Shown one piece after another: positions 4,640-61,535 of a DNA stretch of 64,000 nucleotides. The stretch lies in contig JAXLNO010002694.1 of the NCBI GenBank assembly GCA_038087875.1, forward strand, positions 248,001 to 312,000, read 5' to 3'. The notes beneath the pieces were generated by a model. That model did not search any database, was not told the origin of the DNA, and saw nothing but the letters and a program-made list of their open reading frames with translations. Position numbers and translations under genes: made by a program. The first letter of the stretch is position 1; each line of letters opens with the position of its first letter. This stretch comes from Malacoraja senta (lineage: Eukaryota).

Positions 4640-7445
4640 GTGTTTAGGCACACAGAATACATGGGGATCGAGGATCTAGTGGGAGGGAGGAACTGAAGGG
4701 AATCCACATTAGTCAGGAAATGGTGTTAGGTAAACTGTTGGGACTGAAGGCTGATAAATCCCCAGGGTCTGATCCCAGAGAACTCAAGGAGGTGGCCCTA
4801 GAAATTGTGGATGCATTGATGATCATTTTCCAATATTCTCTCGATTCTTTGATCAGTTCCTGTGGACTGGAGAGTAGCCAATGTAACTCCACTTTTTAAG
4901 GAAGGAGGAAGGGAGAAAACTGGGAATTATAGGCCAGTTAGCCTTACATCGGTAGTGAGGAAGATGCTTGAGTCGATCGTTAAAGACGTTATAGCAGTGC
5001 ATTTAGAAAGCAGTGACAGGAAGGATTTATGAAGGGGAAGTCATGCTTGACTATCCATGTGGAATTTTTTGAGGATGTAACAAATAGAATGGATAAGTGA
5101 GAGCCAGTGGACGTGGTGTATCTGGACTTTCAAAAACCCTTTGACCAGGTCCCACACAAGAGATTAGTGTGCAAAATTAGAGCACATGTTATTGGCGGTA
5201 GGGTATTGACATGGATAGAGAACTGGTTGGCAGACAGGAAGTAAAGAGTAGGAATTAACGGGTCCTATAAAGGATCGCAGGCAGTGACTAGTGTGGTGCC
5301 GCAAGGCGCAGTGCTGGGACACCAGTTATTTACAATATATATTAACGATTTAGACTAGTGGTTCCCAACATGGGGCGTACGCCGCACAAGGGGGCAATTT
5401 GATTTTTAAGGGGGGCAATTGAGCGCGACTGAGGAGGTCTGGGTCCAAATTTTCAATTTTTATTTTTTTGGATTTTCCATCAGGTAAACATATGTAGTTT
5501 ATGTTTCAGATGTTATTTTGAGTAAATAATTTTTGGGGGGTAAAAAAGGTCTTTATTGTGTAGTTATTACATAATCACCGCGCCATCGCTCTTCATGCAC
5601 GTCGCACGAAGCGCGCGAGGTCATGGGAGAACCTTATTTATTGAATTGGATTTAGAAATGCGATTCAAAGAGCTTTTGCTAAGTTACCCTTATAATATCT
5701 ATTTCCTCCGTTTTCTCTCAAGGGAAAGCAATCCATTTTCTGAGAATTATTTCTTTGACTGCTCGTGCTAAAATGAGTAGTACAAGCAAGAAGAAAGTTT
5801 GTCAGTATTCAGAGGAATATTTAAAACTTGGTTTCATACCCGCTGTCCATGATGAACGGTCACCTTTCTGCCTCTTATGCCAACAATGCTTGACCAACGA
5901 ATCAATGAAACCAGGTCGTCTTGAGGCGCATTTGAAGGCGAAACATAGTGCGTATGTAAATTCAGATTTGAATTACTTCAAATCTTTAAAGGATAAGTTT
6001 GAAAAAAGATCAACAATAAAGTCTGTTTACTGCACAAACTGTTACTGTCAGTCGTACTCTTGAGGCTAGTTATGAAATTTCTTTACTCATTGCTAAATCT
6101 GGAAAAAATCATACTATAGGGGAGGATTTAATTAAACCATCAATATCAGCATTTCTTAAAACAGTTCTGTAAAAAGATGACAAAGATGTTAAAGCCATGC
6201 CACTCAGTAACAACACTGTTAGGAGAAGAACAGATGAAATGAGTGAAGATATTGAAACACAACTTGTTGAAAAGCTGAAATCAAGAAAATTCTCAGTACA
6301 AATGGATGAATCAACTGTGAGAGACAGTGAGGCCTTATTGCTAACCTATGTAAGATATATTGATAAAGGTGAATTTGCTGAAGAAATGTTATTCTGCAAA
6401 TCGTTAGAGACCACCACTACCGCCACTGATATATATAATAAACTAAAACACTACTTAGATGTCAATAATATACCAATGGAAAACATAACATCTTGTGCAG
6501 CTGATGGTGCTCCTGTTATGATGGGCAAGAAAAATGGTTGCTTAAAATTGATGAAAGATGAGAATCCGGAAATGCTTCTTGTGCACTGTGTTATTCATAG
6601 AGGGAACTTAGTGTTGAAAAATATTTCTCCTGTACTTAATGAGGTACTGAAATCAGTTATAAAATCTATCAATGCTATCAAAGCTAATGCCAAATGTGGG
6701 CGTCTTTTCAAGCAATTTTATGAAGATAACAATGCAGACCATGTGAGACTTTTACTTCACACTGAGGTACGGTGGCTTGGAGATGTTACATTTAATTCCT
6801 TCGTCTAAATTTTAGACGAAGGAATTAAATGTAACATCTCCAAGTTTGTGGATGAAACAAAGCTGGGTGGTAGGGTGAGGAGAATGCTATGAGGCTGCAG
6901 GGTGACTTGGATAGGTTGGGTGAGGGGGAAGATGCATGGCAGATGCAGAATAATGTGGATAAATGTGAGGTGGTAAGAACAAGGCAGATTATTATCTGAA
7001 TGGTGTCAGATTAGGAAAAGGGGAAGTGCACGAGACCTGGGTGTCCTTTTACATCAGTCACTGAAAATAAGTCGCAGCAGGCAGTGAAGAAAGCTAATTG
7101 AATGTTGGCTTCATTGCAAGAGGTTTTGAGTTTAGGAACAAGGAGGTCCTACTGCAGTTGTACAGGGCCCTGGTGAGGACATTATTGCTATTGAGGAAGT
7201 GCAGCATACGTTTACCATGTTAATTCCCAGGATGGTGGCACTGACATATGATGAAAGAATGAGTCGACTGGGCTTGTATTCAGTGCAATTTAGAAGGATG
7301 AGAGGGTATCTTATAGAAACATATAAAATTCTTAAAGGATTGGACAGGCTAGATGCATGAAACATGTTCCTGATATTGGGGGAGTCCAGAACCAGTGGTC
7401 ACAGTTTAAGAATAGCGGGTAGGCCATTTAGGATTGAGATGAGGA
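4640..7445 (+). mobile_element. Degenerate CR1 RT fragment split by a hAT insertion (CR1 parts 4640-5355 and 6811-7445)
   Basis: Homologous to the CR1 RT in ORF 59728..61158. The CR1 sequence resumes after the hAT at the tttagac target repeat. Confidence 0.85.
5356..6778 (+). mobile_element. hAT (Buster/Charlie-type) DNA transposon, 3'-truncated, inactivated transposase
   Basis: Left TIR TAGTGGTTCCCAAC; BED zinc finger (CLLC...HLKAKH); catalytic motifs FSVQMDEST and AADGAPVM, CxxH (HCVIH) and HTEVRWL. Frameshift near 6030 and in-frame TAA near 6169. The C-terminal catalytic E region and right TIR are absent. Confidence 0.9.
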
Positions 7446-12470: not shown

Positions 12471-15300
12471 ATAGATACATAGAAAATAGGTGCAGGAGTA
12501 GGCCATTCGGCCCTTCAAGCCTGCACAGCCATTCAATATGATCATGGCTGATCATCCAACTCAGTATCCCGTACCTGCCTTCTCTCCATACCCCCTGATC
12601 CCTTTAGCCACAAGGGCCACATCTAACTCCCTCTTAAATATTGCCAATGAACTGGCCTCAACTACCCTCTGTGGCAGAGAGTTCCAGAGATTCACCACTC
12701 TCTGTGTGAAAAAGTTTTTTCTCATCTCGGTCTTAAAGGATTTCCCCCTTATCCTTAAGCTGTGACCCCTTGTCCTGGACTTCCCCAACATCGAGAACAA
12801 TCTTCCTCCATCTAGCCTGTCCAACCCCATTAGAATTTTGTAAGTTTCTATAAGATCCCCTCTCAATCTCCTAAATTCTAGCGAGTATAAGCCAAGTCTA
12901 TCCAGTCTTTCTTCATATGAAAGTCCTGACATCCCAGGAATCAGTCGGCTGAACCTTCTCTGCACTCCCTCTATGGCTATAATGTCCTTCCTCAGATTTG
13001 GAGACCAAAACTGTACGCAATACTCCAGGTGTGGTCTCACCAAGACCCTGTACAACTGCAGTAGAACATCCCTGCTCCTATACTCAAATCCTTTTGCTAT
13101 GAAAGCTAACATACCATTCGCTTTCTTCACTGCCTGCTGCACCTGCATGCCTACTTTCAATGACTGGTGTACCATGACACCCAGGTCTCGCTGCATCTCC
13201 CCTTTTCCTAATCGGCCACCATTTAGATAATAGTCTGCTTTCCTGTTTTTGCCACCAAAGTGGATAACCTCACATTTATCCACATTATACTGCATCTGCC
13301 AAACATTTGCCCACTCACCCAGCCTATCCAAGTCACCTTGCAGTCTCCTAGCATCCTCCTCACAGCTAACACTGCCCCCCAGCTTAGTGTCATCCGCAAA
13401 CTTGGAGATGTTGCCTTCAATTCCCTCATCCAGGTCATTAATATAAATTGTAAATAGCTGGGGTCCCAGCAGTGAGCCTTGCGGTACCCCACTAGTCACT
13501 GCCTGCCATTGTGAAAAGGACCTTACTCCTACTCTTAGCATCCTGTTTGCCAGCCAGTTCTCTATCCACATCAATACTGAACCCCCAATACCGTGTGCTT
13601 TAAGTTTGTATACTAATCTCTTATGTGGGACCTTGTCGAAAGCCTTCTGAAAGTCCAGATACAACACATCCACTGGTTCTCCCCTATCCACTCTACTAGT
13701 AACATCCTCGAAAAATTCTATAAGATTCGTCAGACAATGATTTACCTTTCGTAAATCCATGCTGACTTTGTCCAATGATTTCACCACTTTCCAAATGTGC
13801 TGCTATCCCATCTTTAATAACTGACTCTAGCAGTTTCCCCACTACCGATGTTAGACTAACTGGTCTGTAATTCTCCGTTTTCTCTCTCCCTCCCTTCTTA
13901 AAAAGTGGGGTTACGTTTGCTACCCTCCAATCCTCAGGAACTACTCCAGAATCTAAAGAGTTTTGAAAAATTATCACTAATGCATCCACTATTTCTGGAG
14001 CTACTTCCTTAACTACTCTGGGATGCAGCCTATCTGGCCCTGGTGATTTATCGGCCTTTAATCCATTCAATTTACCCAACACCACTTCCCGACTAACCTG
14101 GATTTCACTCAGTTCCTCCATCTCCTTTGACCCGCGGCCCCCTGCTATTTCCGGCAGATTATTTATGTCTTCCTTAGTGAAGACGGAACCAAAGTAGTTA
14201 TTCAATTGGTCCGCCATAGCCTTGTTCCCCAAGATCAATTCACCTGTTTCTGACTGCAAGGGACCTACATTTGTTTTAACTAATCTCTTTCTCTTCACAT
14301 ATCTATAAAAACTTTTGCAGTCAGTTTTTATGTTCCCTGCCAGTTTTCTTTCTTAATCTATTTTCCCTTTCCTAATTAAGCCCGTTGTCCTCCTCTGCTG
14401 GTCTCTGAATTTCTCCCAGTCCTCTGGTATGCTGCTTTTTCTGGCTAATTTGTACGCATCATCTTTTGCTTTGATACTATCCCTGATTTCCCTTGTTATC
14501 CACGGATGCACTACCTTCCCTGATTTATTCTTTTGCCAAACTGGGATGAACAATTTTTGTAGTTCATCCATGCAGTCTTTAAATGCCTTCCATTGCATAT
14601 CCACCGTCAACCCTTTAAGAATCAATTGCCAGTCTATCTTGGCCAATTCACGTCTCATACCCTCAAAGTTACCTTTCTTTAAGTTCAGAACCGTTGTTTC
14701 TGAATTAACAATGTCACTCTCCATCCTAATGAAGAACTCAACCATATTATGGTCACTCTTGCCCAAGGGGCAGGCACAACAAGACTGCTAACTAACCCTT
14801 CCTCATTACTCAATACCTAGTCTAGAATAGCCTGCTCTTTCGTTGGTTCCTCTACATGTTGGTTTAGATAACTATCCCACATACATTCCAAGAAATCCTC
14901 TTCCTCAGCACCCCTGCCAATTTGATTCACCCAATCTATATGTAGATTGAAGTCACCCATTATAACTGTTTTGCCTTTGTTGCACGCATTTCTAATTTCC
15001 TGTTTGATGCCATCCCCAACTTCACTACTACTGTTAGGTGGCGTGTACACAACACCCACCAGCGTTTTCTGCCCCTTAGTGTTTCGCAGCTCTACCCATA
15101 CCGATTCCACATCCTCCAAGCTAATGTCCTTCCTTTCCAGTGCGTTAATCTCCTCTCTAACCAGCAACGCTACCCCACCTCCTTTTCCTTTTCTCTATCC
15201 CTCCTGAATATTGAATATCCCTAGATGTTCAGCTCCAAGCCTTGGTCACCCTGGAGCCATGTCTCCGTGATCCCAACTATATCATAATCATTAATAGCTA
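12471..15300 (-). mobile_element. Young CR1 LINE with most of ORF2 (endonuclease + RT)
   Basis: EN motifs (LVGVVY, IMGDFN, SDH) at 14353-15167; RT ORF 12561-13787 (YLDFQKAFDKVPH, GVPQGS, FADD); 3' UTR and (CATAGA..) tail. A few stops and frameshifts. Confidence 0.95.
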
Positions 15301-22219: not shown

Positions 22220-22995
22220 AGGGCCTGTCCCACTTGGGGGTCATTTGCACGTCATTTACGCGACATAATTTACGTGTCGTGACGTGCACGTGATGCGCGC
22301 ATGGTGCGCATTACGCGCGTGTGGTGCGTGGTGATAGAAACATAGAAACATAGAAAATAGGTGCAGGAGTAGGCCATTCGGCCCTTCGAGCCTGCACCGC
22401 CATTCAATATGATCATGGCTGATCATCCAACTCAGTATCCTGTACCTGCTTTCTCTCCATACCCCCTGATCCCTTTAGCAACAAGGGCCACATCTAACTC
22501 CCTCTTAAATATAGCCAATGAACTGGCCTCAACTACATTCTGTGGCAGAGAATTCAAGAGATTTACCACTCTCTGTGTGAAAAATGTTTTCCTCATCTCG
22601 GTCCTAAAAGATTTCCCCCTTATCCTTAAACTGTGACCCCTTGTTCTGGACTTCCCCAACATCGGGAACAATCTTCCTGCATCTAGCCTGTCCAACTCCT
22701 TAAGAATTTTGTACGTTTCTATAAGATCCCCCCTCAATCTTCTAAATTCTAGCGAGTACAAACCGAGTCTATCCAGTCTTTCTTCATATGAAAGTCCTGA
22801 CATCCCAGGAATCAGTCTGGTGAACCTTCTCTGTACTCCCTCTATGGCAAGAATGTCTTTCCTCAGATTGTAGGCAGTGACACGCGGTTGTGCGCAGCCC
22901 CCCAGGATTTTGGGATGTACAATACCTTTGCGCGCCATCTACGTGCCCAAGTGCGTGCCCATCTGCGCAAATGATGCCCAAGTGGGACAGGCCCT
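22220..22995. mobile_element. PIF/Harbinger-like MITE with a nested young CR1 3' end (22334-22869, minus)
   Basis: TIRs AGGGCCTGTCCCACTTGGG / CCCAAGTGGGACAGGCCCT; flanks TAA / TAT (TWA-like); CpG-rich interior. Confidence 0.7.
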
Positions 22996-24057
22996 TATAG
23001 ATGCAAGAACTGACATAACAATTTCAAATGCCACTGTCTCACAGTGCCAGAGACCAGGAACAAGGAAATGCAGATGCTGGTTATACCCCCAAAAAAACAC
23101 AAATTGCTGGAGTAACTCCACAAAATGCTGGATTTTTATGGGCGGCACTGTGGCGTAGCGGCCAGAGACTCGGGTTCCATCCTGACTACGAGCGCTGTCT
23201 GTACGGAGTTTGTACGATCTCCCCGTGACCTGCGTGGGTTTTCGCTGAGATCTTCGGTTTCCTCCCACACTCCAAAGATGTACAGATTTGTACGTTAATT
23301 CACTTGATATAAAATGTAAAATTGCCCCTAATGCGTGTAGAGTGCTGTTAATGTGCGGGGATCGCTGGTCAGTGTGGACTCGGTGGGCAGAAAGGCCTAT
23401 TTCCGTGCTGTATCTCTAAACTAAACTAAAACTAAAATTAGGTAGTGTCTCCGGAGATCATGGATAGGTGATGTTTCAGTTTAGGACTCCTTATTCAGAC
23501 TGATTGCAGTGGGGGCGGGTAAGAATGTAGAAAAAAAGGAAGATTGTGACCGGTAATTTAGTAATGGGTGATCACAGGCGAGGGGGTTGTCTGATAGGCA
23601 GAGACGAAAAGAATGGCGTAATTCCAGAAAGGATAAAAAGTTACGAATTGCGAAACCCAAGATTAGAAAAGGGGGTGGCACGGTGGCGCAGTGGTAGAAT
23701 TGCTGCCTTACAGTGCCAGAGACCCGGGTTTGATCCTGATCACGGGTGCTGTCTGTATGGAGTTTGCACGTTCTCCCCTTGACCACGTGGGATTTCTCCG
23801 AGATCTTCGGTTTCCTTCCACACTCCAAAGACGTACAGGTTTGTAGGTTAATTGGCTTGGAGTAAGTGTCCTTAGTGTGTGTAGGATAGTGTTAATGTGC
23901 GGGGATCGCTGGTCGGTGTGGACTCGGTGGCCTGCTGTACCTCTAATGAAAATATTTGTTTTCACGTAGCTAATTATTGATCCAATTCAAGGGATGCGGG
24001 GGGGGGAAGAAACCAATGAAAGGTGAATTAGGGGTCAAGGGAGTGGGAGCGAGGGAA

Positions 24058-24585
24058 ATAGAAACATAGAAACATAGAAATTAGGTGCAGGAGTAAGCCA
24101 TTCGGCCCTTCGAGCCTGCACCGCCATTCAATATGATCATGGCTGATCATCCAACTCAGTATCCCGTACCTGCCTTCTCTCCATACCCTCTGATCCCTTT
24201 AGCCACAAGGGCCACATCTAACTCCCTCTTAAATATAGCCAATGAACTGGCCTCGACTACCCTCTGTGGCAGAGAGTTCCAGAGATTCACCACTCTCTGT
24301 GTGAAAAAAGTTCTTCTCATCTTGGTTTTAAAGGATTTCCCCCATATCCTTAAGCTGTGACCCCTTGTCCTGGACTTCCCCAACATCGGGAGCAATCTTC
24401 CTGCATCTAGCCTGTCCAACCCCTTAAGAATTTTGTAAGTTTCTATTAGATCCCCTCTCAATCTCCTAAATTCTAGAGAGTATAAACCAAGTCTATCCAG
24501 TCTTTCTTCATAAGACAGTCCTGACATCCCAGGAATCAGTCTGGTGAACATTCTCTGCACTCCCTCTATGGCAATAATGTCCTTC
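24058..24585 (-). mobile_element. Young CR1 3' fragment
   Basis: Near-identical to the 3' end of 12471-13787; (CATAGAAA)n tail. Confidence 0.92.
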
Positions 24586-27500
24586 GTGTGTGATAAATGT
24601 TTGCAGGTTAATTGGCCTCTGTAAATTGCCCCTAAACTGCAGGGAATGGATGACAAAGTGGGATAACATAGAACTTGTGTGAATGGGAATCAATGGTCGG
24701 TGTGGACTCAGTGGGCTGGAGGGCTGTTTCCATGTTGTAGCTTTCAATCCAACAAGATGCAAAAGTGGTACCTGGTGAAAGGGATAGCAAGCAACAGCCG
24801 AAGAATACGGCAGGTCAGTTATGCTGCAGCTTTATAGGGCTTTGGTTGGGCAACATTTGAAGTATTGCATGCTGTTCTGGTCGCCTCATTACACGGTGGA
24901 TGTGGAGACTTTGGAGAGGGTACAGAGGGAAATTTACCAGAATGTTGCCTGGATTAGAGGGTATTTGCTATAAGGGGTCTCTGGAATGCTGGAGATTGAG
25001 GGGAGGCCTGATAGAAGTACATAAAATGATGAGAGGCATAGATGGGGTAGAATCTAATCCCCAGGGTGGAAAAATCAAATTCTGGAGGGTAGAGGTAAGA
25101 GGGGCAAGTGTGGTGAGTGCCAGAAATTGATTAGTAAGGGTGTCAGGTGTTACGGGGAGAAGGCAAGAGAATGGGGAGTAGACCTGATGGGCCGAGTGGC
25201 CTAATTATGTCCCCTGAACTAATAAACATGAATGTGCTGCTGGGGGGGGGGGGGGGGGGGGGTGAAGGCAGATAAGATAGTGGCATTTAAGAGATATGCA
25301 GTACATGGATATGCATGGAATGGAAGGCTATGAATTATGTGCAGGGAGATAAGGCTTGGTCTTGGCATCATGCTTCTTCTTCTTCTTGTGTATGGCATGC
25401 ACAGCCTAAAGTGAAGTCTGAAGAAGGGTTTCGGGCCCGAAACGTTGCCTATTTCCTTCGCTCCATAGATGCTGCTGCACCCGCTGAGTTTCTCCAGCAT
25501 TTTTGTGTACCCTGTAGGACAACTTGTTCTATTTGATCTTATTGATTGCATTCGTCGAAACAGGGCGGACCACGTGAAGATTGCAGTCTTCCACCCCCGG
25601 CATCATGCTAAGCACAGACATTGTGGGCCAAAGGGCCTGTTACTTTGCTGTATTATTCTATGTTCTAGATAGGGGAGACAGTCTAAACCTTTTTCCCAGG
25701 GTGGAAATTTCAAACACTAGAGGACATCGGTAGTAAAGAAAGCAAACTCAATGCTAACATTTATCTCAAGAGGGCTTGTATACAAAAACAGGGATGTAAT
25801 GCTGAGGCTCTATAAGGTGCTGGTCAGGACGCATTTGGAATATTGTGAGCAATTTTGGGCACCATATCTGAGGAAGGATGTGCTGGCTCTGGAGCGGGTC
25901 CAGAGGAGGTTGACAAGAATGATCCCACGAATGAGTAAGTTAACCTATGATGAGCGATTGTGGGCCTGTACTCGCTGGAGTTTAGAAGAATGAAGGGGGT
26001 AGGGGGGTACCTCATTGAAAGGTACAGAGTAGTGAAAGGCTTGGATAGAGTGGATGTGGAGAGGATGCTTCCACTAGTAGGAGAGTTTAAGATTAGAGGT
26101 CGTGGCCTCAGAATTAAAGGACGTTCTTTAGGAAGGAGATGAGGAGCAATTTCAGAGGTTGGTGAATCTGTGGAATTCATCGCCACAGAACTACTTCTAC
26201 TCCTACAACTTATGACCTTATGACATGGCTTTCAGGTGAGAGAGGCATCTTCCAATCTGAAGAAGGGTTTCAGCCCGAAACGTTACCTATTTCCTTTGCT
26301 CCATAGATGCTGCTGCACCCGCTGAGTTTCTCCAGCATTTTTGTGTATCTTCCAATCTTTGGTACCTTAGGCAGCAAAGGTGTTCTCGAGAGATGTGGCC
26401 AGATCTGCTGATTTACTCCAGTGCTTTGTATTTCTTTTATTGTAACCCAGCAACTGCAATACCTTGTTTCTTAAAGATTTATAAATTACTGTCTCTTCCC
26501 TTGCCTCCCATAGCAGGACATGGGAGGCAAGGTCCGCCAAGTGGCTCAGCGGTAGAGTTTGCAGTGTATGAACATTGAATTCTCCCAACTCTGCTAGCCC
26601 TTGCTGTCCCCTCCCCTTCATCAGCCCTCTGGTTGTCTCCTCCCATCCCCCAGCCCTCGGGCTCCTCCTCCGCCTTTTTTCCTTTTTTCCTTTCTTCTCC
26701 CCACCCCCTATCAGTTTGAAGAAGGGTTTCGGCCCGAAACGTTGCCTATTTCCTTCGCTCCATAGATGCTGCTGCACCCGCTGAGTTTCTCCAGCATTTT
26801 TGTGTACCTTCAGCGGTAGAGTTGCTGCTTTAACCGCCAGAAACCCACGTACGATTCCGACTACGGGTTCTGTTTGTATGGAGTTTGTACCTTCTCCCCG
26901 TGACCGCGTGGGTTTTCTCCGAGTGCTCTGGTTTCCTCCCACACGCCAAAGACGCACAAGTTTGTAGGTTAATTGGCTTTGGTAAAATTGTAAATTGTCT
27001 CTAGTGTGTAGGATAGTGCTAGGGTATGATCGCTGGTCGGCATGGACTCGGTTGGCTGAAGGGCCTGTTTCTGTGCAGTATCTCTAAAGTCTAAAATCTA
27101 AAGCAGCCGGTGATAAATCTTAAAAGGCATGGGGGACTATTCATCTGTAAACCTACGAAAACATCTAATACTTCCTTATTTTATCATGGTATTATGTCCC
27201 TACACCCTCTGTCTGCAAGTGCTCTGTATCTCTCCCTGTTCATTGCATGTTCATCAGGCAATTGTCTAAAAGCCTCTTAAATGTAATTATCTGCCTCCAC
27301 CCCCACTCCCGTCATGCCTGAACAGTCTGCAGCTTGGAATGTCGCGCTGCCAGTCCTGCCTGACTCCCAGCCATGTCTCCTTGATAGCAATGTCGTCATA
27401 GTCCTTTGTGTTGATCGACGCCCAAATATAATCACCTTACCTGTCAGGCACCTTGCATTAAAATGATTGCGATTTAGCCTTTCATTCCCCACACCCTTGC

Positions 27501-28129
27501 TTCACCACACCCACGTTCGCTCTGCTGACTGGACTGAATTAGTGTCCCTGCAATTACTGACTGTGCTTCCTGTTAACCCCTCCCCCCCCCCCCCCCCCCC
27601 AGCACTCTGTGCCCCATTCCCTTGCCAAATTAGTTTAAAGACAACCTGGCTGTGGTACCGGGTCTGAAGAAGGGTTTCGACCCGCAAAGTTGCCTATTTC
27701 CTTCGCTCCATAGATGCTGCCTCACCCGCTGAGTTTCTCCAGCATTTTTGTCTACCTTAGTTTAAAGACAAAGTGCTGGAATAACTCACGATTTAGGCAG
27801 CATCTCTGTCGAACATGGATCCATTCCCTCCACTGATGCTGCCCGGCCTGCTGAGTTACTCCAGCACTTGGTATGTTTTTTCTTTTGTAAACTGGCATCT
27901 GCGGTTCCTCGTGTCTCCAAATGAATGGTTTTGTGGCCATGTTTGCAGATGATACGAAGATAGTTGGGGGTGCAGGTAGTGTCGAGGAAGCAGAGAGGCT
28001 GCAGAAGGAATTGGACAAATTGGGAGAGTGGGCAAAGAAGTGGCAAAGGAATAATGGTGTAGATTATTTTCTAAATGGGAAGAGGATTCAGAAATCAGAG
28101 ATCTTCAAATATGTCGCTTTGCTAAAACA

Positions 28130-30380
28130 GTGTTTCCCTCATTTCCTCATCTGTCCACTAAGAGCCAATTAGACACTATTCTGGAGTTGGACCCCTTTGA
28201 CAAGAAATGTGTTTCAGCAATTTACACATGAATACAGGAATTAAAACAGATAACCTGGGACAAAACTAAAGTGTCATGGGAGAGGGACCTGGGTGTAGAG
28301 CTTTCTGATGAGGTGTGGCGAGAGGCTTAAACGTATAGGCAAGGCAAGGCAAATTTATTTGTATAGCACCATTCGTGCAAACAGCAATTCAAGGTGCTTT
28401 ACAGGAAAGAAAAAATAAAATAGTCAATAATTAAAAATTGCAAAATAAGCAATACGACAAACGTATGAATAATAAAACAACGTCAATGAAGCAATAAAAC
28501 AATTTTAAAAAGCACATAAAAGGGTTAAAATTAGACGGTTAAGATTACCTGCATGTCAGGTTATGGAAAAGCTCTGGTAAACAACAGTGTTTTAAGGCCT
28601 GATTTAAATGCGCTTACAGTCTGTGCCCACCTCAGGTGTTCAGGGAGCTTGTTCCACAGGTGTGGAGCATAAAAACCCAATGCTGCTGCAACCTTTTTAG
28701 TTCTGACCCTGGGAACACAGAGTAAACCTGTCCCTGAAGACCTGAGGAGTCTAGGCGCCTCATATACAACAAGTAGGTCAGAGATGTATTTTGGACCTAG
28801 ACCATTCAGTGCCTTGTAGGTCAGTAACAGAATTTTAAAATCTATCCTCTTACACACAGGGAGCCAGTGCAAAGATTTAAGGACAGGTGTAATGTGGTCC
28901 ATTTTCTTGGTGTTGGTCAAGACTCTGGAAGCGGCATTTTGGATAAGCTGCAGTTGTTTAATTGATTTTGTATTTGAGACCTGTAAAGATGCCATTACAA
29001 TAATCTAACCTACTAAAAATATATGCATGAACAAGTTTTTCAGTGTCTTCTTTGGACAGAAATCCCTTGATTCTTGCAATATTTTTTAGATGGTAATAGG
29101 CAGATCTGGTAATGGTCTTTATATGGCTGATAAAATTCAAATCCGAGTCCATAACTACACCAAGGTTTCTGGCTTTGTCTGTGGTTTTCAGTGCAATTGA
29201 GTCGAGTTGAGCACTCACCTCTAGCCTTGTTTTATTGGGACCAAAGACAATAATTTCTGTCTTATTTGCATTGAGCTGGAGGAAGTTCTGGTTCATCCAC
29301 TCATTGATATGTTTGACACATTGGCTCAGTGAGTGTAGGGGACTATGGTCATGTGGTGACACTGCGATATATAGTTGTGTGTCATCGGCATAAGTGTGGT
29401 AGGATATGTTAAAATGCTCTATGATCTGAGCTAGGGGGAGCATATAAATGTTGAACAAAATGGGTCCAAGAATGGAGCCCTGAGGAACCCCGCATGTGAG
29501 TTTTGTACGTTCTGATTCAAAATTACCAAGGGAAACAAAATAATCCCGATCTTTCAAGTAAGATTTGAACCAGTCCAGCACAGAACCAGAGAGTCCCACC
29601 CTCTTCTCCAGTCTGTCAAGCAGTATGTTGTGGTCCACCGTATCAAAAGCAGCACATTGCTGTGTATACGCCATGGGTTGATCCAATTTAAAGTCCTTCA
29701 CCCTCTTCATTATTCAAGAAACAAACTTGCCATAATCTTGTCTACCACAGATCCTGGCTGCCCTAGATGTGGCCATAGCCCAGCCTCTGTAGGACACATG
29801 TTTTGGACATGTCCCTCTCTCATCAGCCACTGGGGAAACATATTTGAGGTATTCTCCCATATCTGCAGACATGACTATAAATCCTGACTTGCACGCAGCT
29901 ATCTTTGGAATACCACCCCCAAACTGTAAGCTTACAAATTTACAAGCATTGCTTGCTCGCAGGCTTATTCTTTTCAACTGGAAGTAAAAAAAAGCTCCAT
30001 CTTTTTTGCAGTGGTTAAAGGAGGTGCTCTCCTTTTTGCCCTTGGAAAAGATCAGGTATAAACGGTGCAAGTCCCGCAGAAACTTTGCTCTGAGCTGGAA
30101 CCCTTTTATAGATCTTATTACAGATTTTTCCTTTAACTGAAAATATTGTCTACACAGTCATAATCATTTATTTATATGTGCATGTTGCTGTTGTTAACAT
30201 GTAACATTTGAACACAAAGACTGCCTTTTAAACAAATTTTTTTATTTTCTCTTTCTCGTTTTTGAGCCTTGGGGATAGGGAGGGGTATATAAGTTTTGTA
30301 CTGTTCTGTACTGTTTGTTGGTGTTCTGCGTAAATTTGTGTTTATAACTTGAAAACCAAAAATAGAGTTGTTTTTTTTTA
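28130..30380 (+). mobile_element. L1/Tx1-type ORF2 3' fragment interrupted by an L2
   Basis: CIRHGLIQFKVLH...CPRCG...HMFWTC cysteine-rich C-terminal domain, preceded by a W.RDLG..LSDEVW-like segment. Confidence 0.75.
28338..29654 (-). mobile_element. L2 LINE 3' half (RT)
   Basis: AAFDTVDH, GVPQGSILGP, YADDTQLY, SRLDYCN, HITPVLKSLHWLPV; (TTGCC)n tail. Confidence 0.92.
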
Positions 30381-52909: not shown

Positions 52910-53310
52910 CAGCCCAGACTCAAACAGTTTAAAAAACAAGAAACCGCACCTTCAACATCAGGCTTAGAGGTTCGACACAAAATGCTGGAGTAACTCAGCG
53001 GGACAGGCCAAGAAGGGTCTCGACCCGAAACATCACCCGTTCCTTCTCTCCAGAGAGGCTGCCTGTCCCGCTGAGTTATACCAGCATTTTGTGTCCAACT
53101 TTGTTTTAATACAGCATATGCAGTTCCTTCCGATGCTGGACATTAGGGGGCACAGGCTTTTCAGTTAACTAGGATGAGAGAGTTATTAGCTGGAAGAAGA
53201 GGCGCGGCAAACCTGGGAAAATGTAGAAACAAGGAACTGCAGACGCTGGTTAATGCACAAAAGGACACAAAGCGCTGGAGAATGATACAGGGATCCTTGT
53301 CACGATTCAC

Positions 53311-56300
53311 GCGAAACACCAAGGAGCAGAAAACGTTAGTGGGAGTTGTGTACAGGCCACCCAACAGTAGTAGTGGAGTTGGGGATGGCATCAAACAGGA
53401 AATTAGAAATGCGTACAACAAAGGTAAAACAGTTATAATGGGTGACTTCAATCTACATATAGATTGGGTGAATCAAATTGGCAGGAGTGCTGAGGAAGAG
53501 GATTTCTTGGAATGTATGCGGGATAGTTTTCTAAACCAACATGTAGAGGAACCAACGAGAGAGCAGACTATTCTAGACTGGGTATTGAGTAAAGAGGAAG
53601 GGTTAGTTAGCAGTCTTGTATTGCGTGGCCCCTTGGGCAAGAGTGACCATAGTATGGTTGAGTTCTTCATTAGGATGGAGAGTGACATAGTTAATTCAGA
53701 AACAAGGGTTATGAACTTAAAGAAAGGTAACTTTGAGGGTATGAGACGTGATTTGGCCAAGATAGACTGGCAATTGATTATTTTAAAAAATTTTAATTTT
53801 TATTTATTAGAAGTACATTACATTACAACCACATACATTAGTACTCGTCATTTATATCTTCTTACAATTAATGTACTCCATTTATTTTTTACACTAGAAA
53901 AGGAAAAGATTGAAAGAAAGAAGAAAGTGAAGGAAAAAGTGAAAGTGTAGAAAATGTGACAACAAAAAAGGACGAAGACCCTATAAGAGCAAAATTAAAA
54001 ACAAAAGAAAAAGAGTTAAGGAATAGACCCTAGAAAAGAAAGAGAAAGAGAAAGAGGAAAAAGAGAGAAACAAATATTTTTATGAGCATTACGTAAATGG
54101 GACATACCAACTCTTCAAATATCATCCCCCCTTTTTTTTAAAGTACTTTTGCACCCTATATTTGTAATAATTCTATAAATGCAGACCACGTCAGGTGGAA
54201 GTGATCTGGTTTACCTGCTAGGAGGAGTCTTATCTCTTCTAGGTGTAATGTTTCAAACATATTTGAAATCCACATATTTATAGTTGGTATTGGAGCCTTC
54301 TTCCAAAATTTTAGAATTAGCTTTTTTCCAGTTATTAACCCATAGTCCATTAGTTTCTTTTGAAACACATTTAGTTCTGGACCATCTTCCGTTATTCCGA
54401 AGATAATCCATTCTGCTTTGGGTATCAGTCTTGTTTTAAATAACTTTGTAAAGATTTCAAAAATTTCATTCCAAAATTTTTGAATTTTTGTACAGAAAAC
54501 GAATGAGTGCGCTATAGTAGCTTCTTGGGATTGACATTTATCACAAATAGATGATACATTTGGGAAAATTGTATGAATTTTAGTTTTCGAATAATATAAT
54601 CTATGTACAATTTTAAATTGTATTAAAGTGTGTCTTACATTAATCGAGCATTTATGCACGTTTAATAAGTGTTCATTCCAACTTTCCTTTGAAATTTTAA
54701 TAGCTAACTCTTGTTCCCAGTCTCTTCTGATACCCTCCGTAGATGGTATTTGTACATTTAAGATAATATTATACAAATATGATATTAAGTTTGCTGATTC
54801 AGCTTTTATCTGCATTGCCTCGTCCAATACATCTACTGGGTTATTATAATGATCTTTTGTATATTTTTTCAAATAGTCGCATATTTGAAAATATTTAAAA
54901 TATTGATTATTTCCGAGTTTATATTTTATTTGTAATTGTTGAAATGAAAGTAATTTTCCAGTTTCATACAAGTCACCAAACGTTTTAATTCCTAGTCTAT
55001 CCCAATGTGTAAAAGCTTTATCTATAATAGAGGGATTAAACGAAGGGTTATTAACTATAGGTAATAAAAGTGATAAATTTCTTAATTTTAAATTTTGTTT
55101 TATTTGTTTCCAAATTCGGATTGTACTATGAATAATTGGGTTCTTATTATAATTTATGTTATTCAATTTCATTGGAGAAAGGAGGATCGCTCCAATGTTT
55201 CTAGAGGAGCAATCCTCTTTCTCCATTACAATCCAGTCCACTTGCTGGGCGGAGTTATCCATCAGTTGAATCATATTTTTAATATTTACTGACCAATAAT
55301 AACACATAAAATTAGGTAGTGCTAAACCCCCTAATACTTTAGGTTTATTCAGATGAGTTTTTTGTATTCTATGTGATTTATAGTCCCATATAAAATTAGT
55401 GATATCTGAGTCGAGTTTTTTAAAAAACGTCTTTGGTAAGTATATAGGAATCGATTGAAATAGGTATAAAATTTGTGGTAGAAAGATCATTTTTATTGCG
55501 TTTATTCGGCCTATTAAAGACATCGGGAGCATTTTCCAGAATTTAATTAGTGTGTTTAATTTATTAAGTAGGGGGTCAAAATTTGCCCTAAACATACCTT
55601 GATATGTTCTGGTAATTTCGATTCCTAAGTATTTAAATTTTTCTGTAGCTATTTTAAAAGGGAATTTTAAAAGATGTGTTGACTCTTTCGGTTTTATTGA
55701 CATAATTTCACTTTTATTCCAATTCATTCTATATCCAGAAAAAGATCCAAAGTCTTCAATTAAATTTAATATATTTGGTATAGTGATTTGAGGTTTTGTA
55801 ATGTACAGTAATATATCATCCGCGTATAAAGATATTTTATTATATGTCTTTAGTATTATATCCATGGATATCAGGGTGTATTCTAATTTTTTCTGCTAGC
55901 GGTTCAATAATGAGAGCAAACAGCTGTGGTGATAATGAGCATCCTTGTCTATTTCCCCTTGATAGTTGGAATTTCGAGGATAATATGTTATTAGTTAGTA
56001 TTCTAGCTGTAGGTTTGTTATATAGTAACTTGATCCATAGAATAAAATTCTCCCCCAGTTGAAATTTTTGTAATACTTTGTCCATATAATTCCATTCTAC
56101 TTGATCAAATGCTTTTTCAGCATCCAGCGAAATAATTGATAATTCTTGATCTTCAGATTTGTGTGAGTGCATTATGTTGAGTAGACGTCTCATATTGTTA
56201 GATGAGTATCTCTTAGGGATAAACCCCGTCTGATCTGGGTTTATTAATTTACTAATATATTTACTTAATCTTCTAGCTAATGTTTTCGCTAATATTTTTT

Positions 56301-59300
56301 GATCTGTGTTTAACAATGCTATAGCTCTATATGAACCAGGTTCTTCTAAATCTTTGTTTTTCTTAGGTATTAGAGTAATCGTTGATTCCGCTAATGTATC
56401 AGGTAGTATTCGTTTTTTAAAAGCATATTGGTACATTTTTTGTAATCTTGGTATTATTTTATCATAAAAGCTTTTATAAAATTCATTAGTAAATTCGTCA
56501 GGGCCTGGTGTTTTTCCATTCTTTAGTGAGTTTATTGTATCTTCTAATTCCTTAATTGAGATTTGTGCACCCAGTTCCTCTTGTTCCTTCAGCTCTAACT
56601 TTGGAAGGTTACAGGTATCCAAAAACTTTGTGATATTATTGGAATCAATTGTCGTTTTAGATGTATACAAATTCTCATAAAATTGCGCAAATCTTTTATT
56701 AATATCCTTCGGTGTTGTTAATAATTCCCCTTTATCTGATTTGATCTTTGGTATAGTATGTTCCTTTTCTCATTTTTTTAGCTGGCGAGCCAAAAGTTTA
56801 TGCGGTTTATCCCCAAATTCAAAGTGCTCTTGTTTTGTAATTTGAAACACGGCTCGAGTGGTTGAAGACATGGCGAAAATGAGGCAAGAACATGAGCAAA
56901 TGAGGCGAGAAAATGAACAAACTTCACTACAGATGGTGACTCAACTGGAGAAAGTCTCAGACAAATGCCTGGACCTGGAAGCTCGCTCTAGACGCCAGAA
57001 TTTGAGAATTCTTGGAGTCTCAGAGGGAGCCGAGGGGGAGGATGTACGTGAGTTTGCCATGGGCTTGTTTAAACAACTGCTGAATCTGTCCAAAGAACTG
57101 AAAATCGAAGTGGCTCATCGTGTCCCAAGATTTAAACAAAGATCTGGTGCGGGAAAAACTTATCCACGACATATTATTGTGAAATTTCGGGATATTTTAG
57201 AACTGGAAGATGTTATGAGCAAAATCAAATACGGTGTGCAACTGCGGCTGGACAATGACACTATTAAGATATTCAGGGACTATCCGTATGAAATTGTGCA
57301 AAAAAGAAACAAATTCGAGAAGGTTAAGGATCTTTTAAGAGGGAGAGAAGGGATCAGATATGGGATTTTCTACCCCGCGAAAATGCGTATTTCCTTTAAG
57401 GGTCTTGAAAAGACATTTGTTAAGCCTGAAGATGCGTTTAAATATGCCCAAACCATCGTTGAAAAATAGAAATGAAAGGGAGGTTTGGCAGATCTGAACC
57501 ATTCTAAGCAATGCTTTGTCTGGGGATAGTTAGACTGTTATCTTTGGAATGTTGAATCAAGGACACTTTCTGTTCAAAACGAGTAAACAGCTGAACAGAT
57601 GAGAATGGTATATACCAGAAGCATATACTTGCTTATTAGATTATAATATTATAACCAATTGTAAGAACTTATCCTATTAACAACTTAATAAGTTATGCAT
57701 GTTAGATTAGAATACTAACAAAAACAACAACAAAAAAATACTGAACTAACATACTAACATGAATTTTTAATAAATTGAAACCTTATCTATAAGTGGGAGG
57801 AGGGGATGAGAAACGAGCACCTGGCTTAGGCCCAGGGGCACGTCTCGTTAACCCCTTCAACCAACAGTTGATTCTTATAGAAGTCAAAAATATCGGTTTA
57901 ATAATTAGTAGTTAAAATTCCGATATATAAATATATATGTTATAATGAAATATACAGGGTAAAATTGTATTATATATCTGAATGTGAGGCCCCATTTTAA
58001 TATTTTAATATGTTATGATTAACCAAGAGAGCGGAGCTATTTGTGTAACAACGCAATGGAAGTCAAAACAAGGTTTCTTCCCACCAACAGGTGGGACACT
58101 CGCTACAGTGCCGATTATATCAGACACTGTATTTTCACTTTTTTTTTTTTTTTTTATCACATAAAATCACATGTTTGTGTTTTGTGTTTAGTGATAAGCA
58201 TAAAATGGACATACCAACAAAACTTAAAAACTCAAAAGCTCCCCCAATACCCAAAGACCTGGGATATGGATGCACCACAAGATTTAAAGGTACTATAATT
58301 ATTCAAAATGCATGACACCAAACAAAAGAACCTAGGAGGAATCTCATTTTGTAGTTGGAATATAAGAGGTATTAACGAACCTATTAAAAGGGGTAAGATA
58401 CTAGCTCAGCTGAAACTGTACAACTCCGACATTACCTTCCTACAAGAAACACACCTAAAATCTCAGGATCAAGTTAGGTTGAGGGCGAAATGGATAGGTC
58501 AAACATACCATTCTTCATTTACTTCAAAATCTAGAGGCACGTCAATCATCATAAGAAAAGGTATACCATTTAAAGCAAAGAATATCATAACAGATATGGA
58601 AGGGAGATACCTAATAGTTAATGGAGAAATCCATGATACTCCACTTACCTTGGTAAATATATATGCCCCTAACTTTGATAACCCCCACTTTTTCAATAAA
58701 ATTTTCAACATAATTGCAGAGTCTAACTATCAAAATGTTATAATAGGAGGAGACTTTAACTGTGTTTTAGATCCGTACTTAGATAAATCAAGTCACAAAC
58801 AGAGTGGGAATATGAAATCGAAAACCGCGGAACTTCTCAATACCTATATAAACAACACTAATATAGCAGATGTTTGGAGAATTCTTAATCCAACTGGCAG
58901 GGAATACTCATTTTATTCAATGGTACATAAGACATACTCACGTATAGACTACTTTCTGCTGGATACAAAATTAATCCCCCAAACATCTAACGCAATATAC
59001 CACACAAATTCGATTTCAGACCATTCTCCACTAACTTTCTTTTTAAAACTAGAAGGATTGTCTAAGAATAAATCGTTTTGGAGATTTAATTCTCAAATTC
59101 TAAAAGATCCACAAGCGAGTATATATTTAAAAGAACAAATGGAGGTCTTTTTTCAAATAAATGATACTCCAGATATATCGCCTACTGTATTATGGGAATC
59201 TTTTAAAGCATACATTAGGGGTATTATAATTTCATATCAAGCTTTTCAAAATAAAAAGAATAAGAATGAACAAAGACAGTTAGAAGAACTTATTAGACAA

Positions 59301-61535
59301 ATGGATATAGATAATGCTAAAGATCCATCAATAGTTAAACATAATAAAATAATAATTTTGAAATTTAAATTAAATAAATTATTATCTGCCAATCTTATAA
59401 GGCAATTGATTCTTAAAGTGTTGACGGTGGATATGCAATGGAAGGCATTTAAAGACTGCATGGATGAACTACAACAATTGTTCATCCCAGTTTGGCAAAA
59501 GAATGAATCAGGGAAGGTAGTGCATCCGTGGATAACAAGGGAAATCAGGGATTGTATCAAACTACAAGATGAAGCATACAAATTAGCCAGAAAAAGCAGC
59601 CTACCAGAGGACTGGGAGAAATTCAGAATCCAGGAGGACAAAGGGCTTAATTAGGAAAGGGAAAATAGATTATGAAAGAAAACTGGAAGGGAACATAAAA
59701 ACTGACTGCAAAGGTTTTTATAGATATGTGAAGAGAAAAAGATTAGTTAAAATAATTGTAGGTCCCTTGCAGTCAGAAACAGGTGAATTGATCATGGGGA
59801 ACAAGGACATGGCAGACCAATTGAATAACTACTTTGGTTCTGTCTTCACTAAGGAAGACATAAATAATCTGCCGGAAATAGCGGGAGAACGGGGGTCAAA
59901 TGAGATGGAGCAACTGAGTGAAATCCAGGTTTGTCGGGAAGTGGTATTAGGTAAATTGAATGGATTAAAGGCCGATAAATCCCCAGGGCCAGATAGGCTG
60001 CATCCCAGAGTACTTAAGGAAGTAGCCCCAGAAATAGTGGATGCATTAGTGATAATTTTTCAAAACTCTTTCGATTCTGGAGTAGTGCCTGAGGATTGGA
60101 GGGTAGCTAATGTAACCCCACTTTATAAAAAGAGTGGGAGAGAGAAAACGGGGAATTACAGTCCAGTTAGTCTAACATCGGTAGTGGAGAAAATGCTAGA
60201 GTCAGTTATTAAAGATGGGATAGCAGCACATTTGGAAAGCGGTGAAATCATTGGACAAAGTCAGCATGGATTTATGAAAGGGAAATCATGTCTGACGAAT
60301 CTTATAGAATTTTTCGAGGATGTAACTAGTATGGATAAGGGAGAACCAGTGGGTGTGTTATATCTGGACTTTCAGAAGGCGTTCGACAAGGTCCCACATA
60401 AGAGATTAGTATGCAAACTTAAAGCACATGGTATTGGGGGTTCAGTATTGATGTGGATAGAGAACTGGCTGGCAGACAGGAAGCAAAGAGTAGGAGTAAA
60501 CGGGTCCTTTTCAGAATGGCAGGCAGTGACTAGTGGGGTACCGCAAGGCTCAGTGCTGGGACCCCAGCTATTTACAATATATATTAATGATTTGGACGAG
60601 GGAATTGAATGCAACATCTCCAAGTTTGCGGATGACACGAAGCTGGGGGGCAGTGTTAGCTGTGAAGAGGATGCTAGGAGGCTGCAAGGTGATTTGGATA
60701 GGTTGGGTGAGTGGGCAAATGCATGGCAGATGCAGTATAATGTGGATAAATGTGAGGTTATCCACTTTGGTGGCAAGAACAGGAAAGTAGACTATTATCT
60801 GAATGGTGGCCGATTAGGAAAAGGGGAGATGCAACGAGACCTGGGTGTCATGGTACACCAGTCATTGAAAGTAGGCATGCAGGAGCAGCAGGCAGTGAAG
60901 AAAGTGAATGGTATGTTAGCATTCATAGCAAAAGTATTTGAGTATAGGAGCAGGGAGGTTCTACTGCAGTTGTACAGGGCCTTGGTGAGACCACACCTGG
61001 AGTATTGTGTACAGTTTTGGTCTCGTAATCTGAGGAAAGACATTCTTGCCATAGAGGGAGTACAGAGAAGGTTCACCAGACTGATTCCTGGGATGGCAGG
61101 ACTTTCATATGAAGAAAGACTGGATAGACTCGGCTTGTACTCACTAGAATTTAGATGATTGAGGGGGGATCTTATAGAAACTTGTTCCCGATGTTGGAGA
61201 AGTCCAGAACAAGGGGTCACAGTTTAAGGATAAGGGGGAAGTCTTTTAGGACCGAGATGAGAAAAACATTTTTCACACAGAGAGTGGTGAATCTGTGGAA
61301 TTATCTGCCACAGAAGGTAGTTGAGGCCAGTTCATTGGCTATATTTAAGAGGGAGTTAGATGTGGCCCTTGTGTCCAAAGTGATCAGGGGGTATGGAGAG
61401 AAGGCAGGTACAGGATACTGAGTTGGATGATGAGCCATGATCATATTGAATGGCGGTACAGGCTCGAAGGGCCGAATGGCATACTCCTGCACCAATTTTC
61501 TATTTTTCTATGTTTCTATGTTCCTATGTTTCTAT
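53311..61535 (+). mobile_element. CR1 LINE split by an L1 insertion (CR1 parts 53311-53779 and 59401-61535)
   Basis: EN half (LVGVVYRPP, MGDFN, SDH) ends ...gactggcaattgatt and resumes ggcaattgattcttaaag; RT ORF 59728-61158; 3' UTR and CTATGTTT tail. Confidence 0.93.
53780..59400. mobile_element. L1/Tx1-clade LINE with 5' inversion (minus segment 53780-~56848; inverted plus segment ~56855-59400)
   Basis: Plus: ORF1 C-terminal part (LEARSRRQNLRI, 56858-57469) and ORF2 APE endonuclease (SWNIRG, LQETH, GGDFN, SRID, SDH; 58308-59400). Minus: rest of ORF2 (KTPGPD, LDAEKAFD, RQGCSLSP, LYADD, CDKC..HSFVFC) and an A-rich tail. 11-bp TSD GGCAATTGATT. Confidence 0.93.

Follow-up and report, generated by a model that had tools for sequence, protein, structure and literature searches.

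Introduction

According to papers that cite their work, Ostertag and Kazazian reportedly described in 2001 how twin priming leads to 5' inversions in human and mouse L1. Human long-read data show a 5' inversion in 18-22% of L1 insertions, and 46% of human 5'-inverted L1 copies have complementary DNA (cDNA) ends no more than 20 bp apart (PMC12016303). Inversions in cultured human cells are associated with target-site duplications (TSDs) of 10-20 bp (PMC4245944). In retrotransposition assays with LINEs (long interspersed nuclear elements) in DT40 and HeLa cells, 5' inversions arose almost only from human L1 in human cells, the exception being one Nimb-2_DR insert in DT40; no inversions were found for L1 in chicken DT40 cells and none for zebrafish ZfL2-1, and 5' inversion was concluded to depend on both the host and the LINE species (PMC4245944). 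Here we describe an L1-clade element in 64,000 nucleotides of DNA from the skate Malacoraja senta (assembly GCA_038087875.1, contig JAXLNO010002694.1, forward-strand positions 248,001 to 312,000), a stretch that we call the window and in which all positions below are counted unless stated otherwise. The 5' part of this element runs opposite to its 3' part, and its structure makes it very probable that a single retrotransposition by twin priming produced a copy that is both 5'-inverted and 5'-truncated.

The skate insert resembles the twin-priming inversions of human and mouse L1 in having one TSD pair, a sense 3' segment with a tail, an inverted 5' segment and adjoining element coordinates. 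Its 11-bp TSD falls within the human 10-20-bp inversion class (PMC4245944), and the distance between its cDNA ends falls within the human class of 20 bp or less (PMC12016303). Unlike the mammalian cases, it is found in a cartilaginous fish and represents a distant L1 lineage, with best protein matches that are 45-69% identical; it ends in a short A/T-rich repeat tail rather than a long poly(A), its putative nick site is not TTTT/A, and its non-inverted segment is long, at 3.07 kb. Compared with the cell-culture assays (PMC4245944), which bear on the same question of inversions beyond human L1 in human cells, the skate copy is a natural germline case of a native L1. Twin priming is known almost entirely from mammalian L1: the papers using the term, judged from those listed and from searches that combined it with fish, zebrafish and non-mammalian, appear to be mammalian studies or to mention it in passing, and one Anolis paper that cites the original twin-priming work does so for 5' truncation only.

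Results

The L1-clade element measures 5,621 bp (53780-59400) and is enclosed by two exact copies of an 11-bp TSD, GGCAATTGATT, which are identical at 11 of 11 positions, with no extension of the identity beyond 11 on either side. The insert is A/T-rich, with approximately 30-35% G+C against approximately 46% in its surroundings. The flanking DNA on both sides belongs to another LINE, referred to here as the host LINE, and when 53780-59411 (the insert plus one 11-mer) is deleted in silico, the open reading frame (ORF) of the host LINE becomes continuous and in frame across the join. An uninterrupted paralog of the host LINE, present elsewhere in the window (14220-15018, minus strand), served as an empty-site control: compared with the joined flanks, it is 94.6% identical over 795 of 800 nt, shows no interruption and carries a single 11-mer. 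Because the host frame is restored and the paralogous empty site has one 11-mer, we conclude that the insert ends and the TSD are real, as the original prediction of a 5.6-kb insert with an 11-bp TSD had proposed. The L1 landed inside an older, dead LINE. The features of the locus, together with the empty-site paralog, are as follows.

53174..53768, plus strand: host LINE, left part, with the endonuclease domain
53769..53779, no strand: left TSD copy, GGCAATTGATT; its plus-strand 3' end is the putative first-strand primer
53780..54155, minus strand: L1 3' untranslated region (UTR), 376 nt, with AATAAA and a 23-nt A/T-rich tail against the left TSD; terminus homologous to the Amblyraja radiata copy
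54156..56850, minus strand: non-inverted segment, in which ORF2 begins at about codon 366 and continues as far as its stop, with the reverse transcriptase (RT) domain and a putative C-terminal Cys/His motif
56848..56853, no strand: internal junction between 56850 and 56851 (+/-3 nt), at which both L1 segments meet head to head by their 5' ends
56851..57469, plus strand: inverted segment, part 1, ORF1 without the 5' UTR and the N-terminal part
57470..58307, plus strand: inverted segment, part 2, inter-ORF spacer of 838 nt
58308..59400, plus strand: inverted segment, part 3, ORF2 codons 1-364 (APE-type endonuclease, linker) and the first base of codon 365
59401..59411, no strand: right TSD copy; it begins with GG, by which the Arg codon of the relatives can be completed
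59412..61158, plus strand: host LINE, right part, continuation of the ORF with the RT domain
14220..15018, minus strand: host-LINE paralog, uninterrupted at the insertion point and with one 11-mer copy, the empty-site control

The domain content and orientation of these segments agree with the earlier proposal that the 3' part lies on the minus strand and the 5' part has been flipped to plus. The non-inverted segment spans 3.07 kb and the flipped 5' part 2.55 kb. The internal junction, which had been placed at about 56848, is upheld, with its position corrected to lie between 56850 and 56851 (+/-3 nt). The resulting arrangement has the geometry of twin priming: one TSD pair surrounds the composite, the tail of the sense 3' segment lies at one TSD, and the L1-3'-most base of the inverted 5' segment lies at the other. 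The inverted segment terminates in the middle of ORF2, directly at the right TSD, and this plus-strand piece has neither a 3' tail nor a TSD of its own.

To place the two break points in L1 coordinates, relatives spanning the break were collected by an exhaustive profile search and a word search, and each half was aligned separately to ten ORF2 proteins. Compared with the plus half, these relatives are between 45% (P0001) and 69% (P0151) identical, with the exception of P0019, whose sequence starts inside the endonuclease and gives 42%. Each of the ten has exactly one residue separating the final complete codon of the plus half (59397-59399) from the Val codon at 56850-56848, and in 8 of the 10 this residue is Arg or Lys. 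In the window, the A at 59400 and the GG of the right TSD together read AGG, an Arg codon.

Two DNA copies gave the same picture. The most similar collinear DNA copy that was fetched comes from the thorny skate, Amblyraja radiata (L002 24113-27932, GCA_010909765.2); it represents a related lineage with 72-75% nucleotide identity and the same ORF2 layout, and its endonuclease, RT and C-terminal parts run on one strand straight through the position at which the window copy is broken. At the break, the A. radiata copy reads ATC AGA TTA TTT CAA ATT and the Logan contig L001 reads ATA AGA TTA TTC CAA ATT, whereas the window has ATA A followed by GG at the TSD, and GTG TTT CAA ATT at the internal junction. 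Window position 59387 corresponds to L002 position 25225 and window position 56847 to L002 position 25244, leaving 2 nt between 59400 and 56850, and the same adjacency of the break points is obtained with L001. By these alignments the halves abut with 0-2 nt missing, or at most 5 if the GTG codon is not derived from L1. The original prediction that they are nearly contiguous in ORF2 is in this way borne out and made more exact by ten proteins and two DNA copies.

The halves are alike in other respects as well. Their nucleotide identities to the A. radiata copy are similar (72.5% and 75.2%), and their G+C contents are similarly low, which is consistent with a single RNA source. With the single TSD pair and the untailed inverted part, the similar divergence is also consistent with both cDNAs having been made from one RNA in one event.

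The 3' end of the element consists of AATAAA followed by 23 A/T-rich nucleotides. The A-rich tail that had been noted at 53780 is therefore a terminal tail but not a stretch of poly(A). At its own end (L002 ~28260-28310), the A. radiata copy shares the CTTCTAATAAA motif and then has a simple tail rich in A/T, and the shared terminus marks the natural end of this L1 lineage. At the other extremity, the flipped part has in turn lost 5' sequence: just 20 nt stand before the first ATG of ORF1, and ORF1 is approximately 70-130 N-terminal residues shorter than the related P0266 and P0265 (the relatives being 269 and 337 residues long).

The description of the insert as lightly mutated holds, since ORF2 carries one stop and one frame change. 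The stop, an in-frame TGA reported near 56780, is present and maps to 56770-56772; the reported 2-nt frameshift near 55845 is a frame change within 55843-55865 that could reflect either one extra or two missing nucleotides. Apart from these lesions, ORF2 is open as far as its natural stop at 54156. The copy has been immobile from insertion onward, and the stop and the frame change in ORF2 were acquired later.

Both halves can be related to L1 proteins. The plus half contains an Exo_endo_phos domain (E=2e-17), the N-terminal APE-type endonuclease of ORF2, and matches residues 8-326 of human ORF2p (E=2.5e-53). The minus half matches residues 388-688 of human L1 ORF2p with E ~1e-66, compared with ~1e-19 for R2 proteins; it also has a match to RVT_1 and a weak one to zf-RVT (18.3 bits against a cut-off of 27.5), and the string C-x2-C-x8-H-x4-C is present in the 569-residue ORF. 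The best PDB matches of both halves are solved structures of human L1 ORF2p. For ORF1, the match to Transposase_22 is weak (18.7 bits, under the 22.4 cut-off); distant matches with 31-33% identity bear the UniRef title 'L1 transposable element RRM domain-containing protein', and the closest ones carry no such name. The 3' end, with AATAAA and an A/T-rich tail, and the 11-bp TSD are both of the kind expected for L1. By its match to human ORF2p, which is clear but remote, the element is assigned to the L1 clade in the broad sense.

Discussion

All of the structural predictions of twin priming that can be examined from the sequence alone are borne out at this locus, and the original prediction is supported accordingly. 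The geometry is observed directly, as are the TSD, the empty site and the adjacency of the halves in L1 coordinates; the succession of steps, the pairing over 2 nt and the joining are reconstructed from them, as follows. The L1 endonuclease would have nicked the window plus strand after GGCAATTGATT, leaving a 3' end in GATT, and this nicked end would have primed reverse transcription at the 3' end of the L1 RNA, which is A/T-rich, to give the cDNA now at 53780-56850. A cut in the second strand 11 nt away would have freed a minus-strand 3' overhang ending in AATCAATTGCC (TTGCC-3'), which could then have paired with the same RNA within ORF2 at codon 365, probably by one or two terminal bases. 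A second cDNA, extended from this overhang toward the 5' end of the RNA and halting inside ORF1, would account for the sequence from 59400 back to 56851. The first cDNA would have halted at the start point of the second, which would explain why the segments abut in L1 coordinates. Host repair would finally have joined the cDNA ends between 56850 and 56851 and completed the second strands, with the 11-bp duplication as the outcome.

As to the pairing at codon 365, the GG at 59401-59402 would give AGG where the relatives have AGA, so that a microhomology of 1 nt is supported and one of 2 nt is possible. Two target-like stretches within the L1 (56642-56652, matching at 10 of 10 positions, and 57865-57880, at 14 of 16) were also considered as sites of pairing between the RNA and the target, and were rejected as chance matches since 40% and 14% of dinucleotide shuffles, respectively, equal them.

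The same final arrangement would result if an ordinary 5'-truncated L1 had inserted in minus orientation and a chromosomal inversion had later flipped just its 5' 2.55 kb. Abutting coordinates are equally expected of such a history, and the flip cannot be dated from sequence alone, but one break point of the inversion would have had to coincide to the nucleotide with the L1/TSD boundary between 59400 and 59401, and no inverted repeats that could have mediated the flip were found at 56851 or 59400, the two flanks of the flipped part. We regard a later inversion as quite improbable. A flip introduced by the assembler into part of a repeated element is very improbable. In its favour, L1 copies are repeats; yet the 64-kb window holds no second copy of the inserted L1 family, and the misassembly would need breaks falling precisely on the TSD boundary and on the corresponding L1 position while sparing a perfect TSD and a restorable host ORF.

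Two independent L1 fragments could also have come to lie side by side in opposite orientation, either because one inserted within or next to the other or because two cDNA pieces were captured at a double-strand break, and LINEs are indeed nested within one another in the 64-kb window. Against this, the plus-strand piece is tailless, lacks its own TSD and ends in the middle of ORF2 at the host TSD, and a single 11-bp TSD pair encloses both pieces. The similar divergence of the halves from the A. radiata copy already suggests one subfamily, and chance abutment to within ~5 nt in a 6-kb element has a probability of ~0.002 by our own rough estimate. Of the histories considered, we hold this one to be extremely improbable.

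Some observations do weigh against a single twin-priming event, or limit what can be drawn from it. The junction at 56850 is known from one assembly only, and exact look-ups found the chimeric ORF at 58308-59651 and the 569-residue ORF on record in no other assembly. As the closest relative has 69% protein identity and no full-length copy of the same family is available, the break points are uncertain by ~3 nt and the 2-nt microhomology is inferred. The first-strand nick site, GATT/CT, is unlike the TTTT/A preference of mammalian L1. Twin priming is moreover itself a model inferred from structures such as this one, to which a single further copy adds no independent mechanistic proof.

The element and its surroundings show several other features. 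In the coiled-coil part of ORF1 there is a 21-nt tandem duplication (56877-56918, 86% identical), by which a block of seven residues is repeated (the KMRQEHE / QMRRENE region). The inter-ORF spacer contains an ORF of 74 codons (58091-58315), and its TGA stop at 58313-58315 overlaps the start of ORF2, the ATG of which is at 58308-58310 (ATGCATGA). The second copy of the host LINE (14220-15018, 800 nt), being 94.6% identical, suggests that the host LINE family was active shortly before the L1 insertion. We saw no evidence that the insert has a bearing on the neighbouring major histocompatibility complex (MHC) class I gene. Elsewhere in the window, a short C-terminal fragment of L1 ORF2 (29663-30131, plus strand) adjoins an RT-like fragment (29234-29650, minus strand) with 29% identity to an L1 RT. 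This pair (29234-30131) probably consists of the 3' fragment of an L1 and a neighbouring, different LINE, and does not resemble a second case of twin priming because the coordinates are not contiguous.

In A. radiata CM021375.1 (L002 7001-27932), the NCBI gene model LOC116978134 (P0266, annotated as 'uncharacterized protein') has two separate matches to L1 ORF1, at 7280-7417 and 22763-23140, with 15 kb between them, and a collinear L1 ORF2 comes next at 24150-27919. From these matches, LOC116978134 looks like the two parts of an interrupted L1 ORF1 stitched together rather than a host gene.

The skate insert shows cleanly, outside mammals, a copying accident that was already known, the mechanism of which is not new and is textbook material for mammalian L1. 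That a cartilaginous fish has the same accident, and in a distant L1 lineage, is a modest extension, and the skate case, with its paralogous empty site and nearly abutting break points, provides a template for genome-wide counting. We consider it an even call whether L1 insertion in skates regularly leads to 5' inversion by twin priming or this copy is a one-off. If it is regular, priming by L1 ORF2p from a second-strand overhang would date at least to the common ancestor of jawed vertebrates and would not depend on mammalian host factors, which would qualify the dependence on host and LINE drawn from cell-culture assays (PMC4245944).

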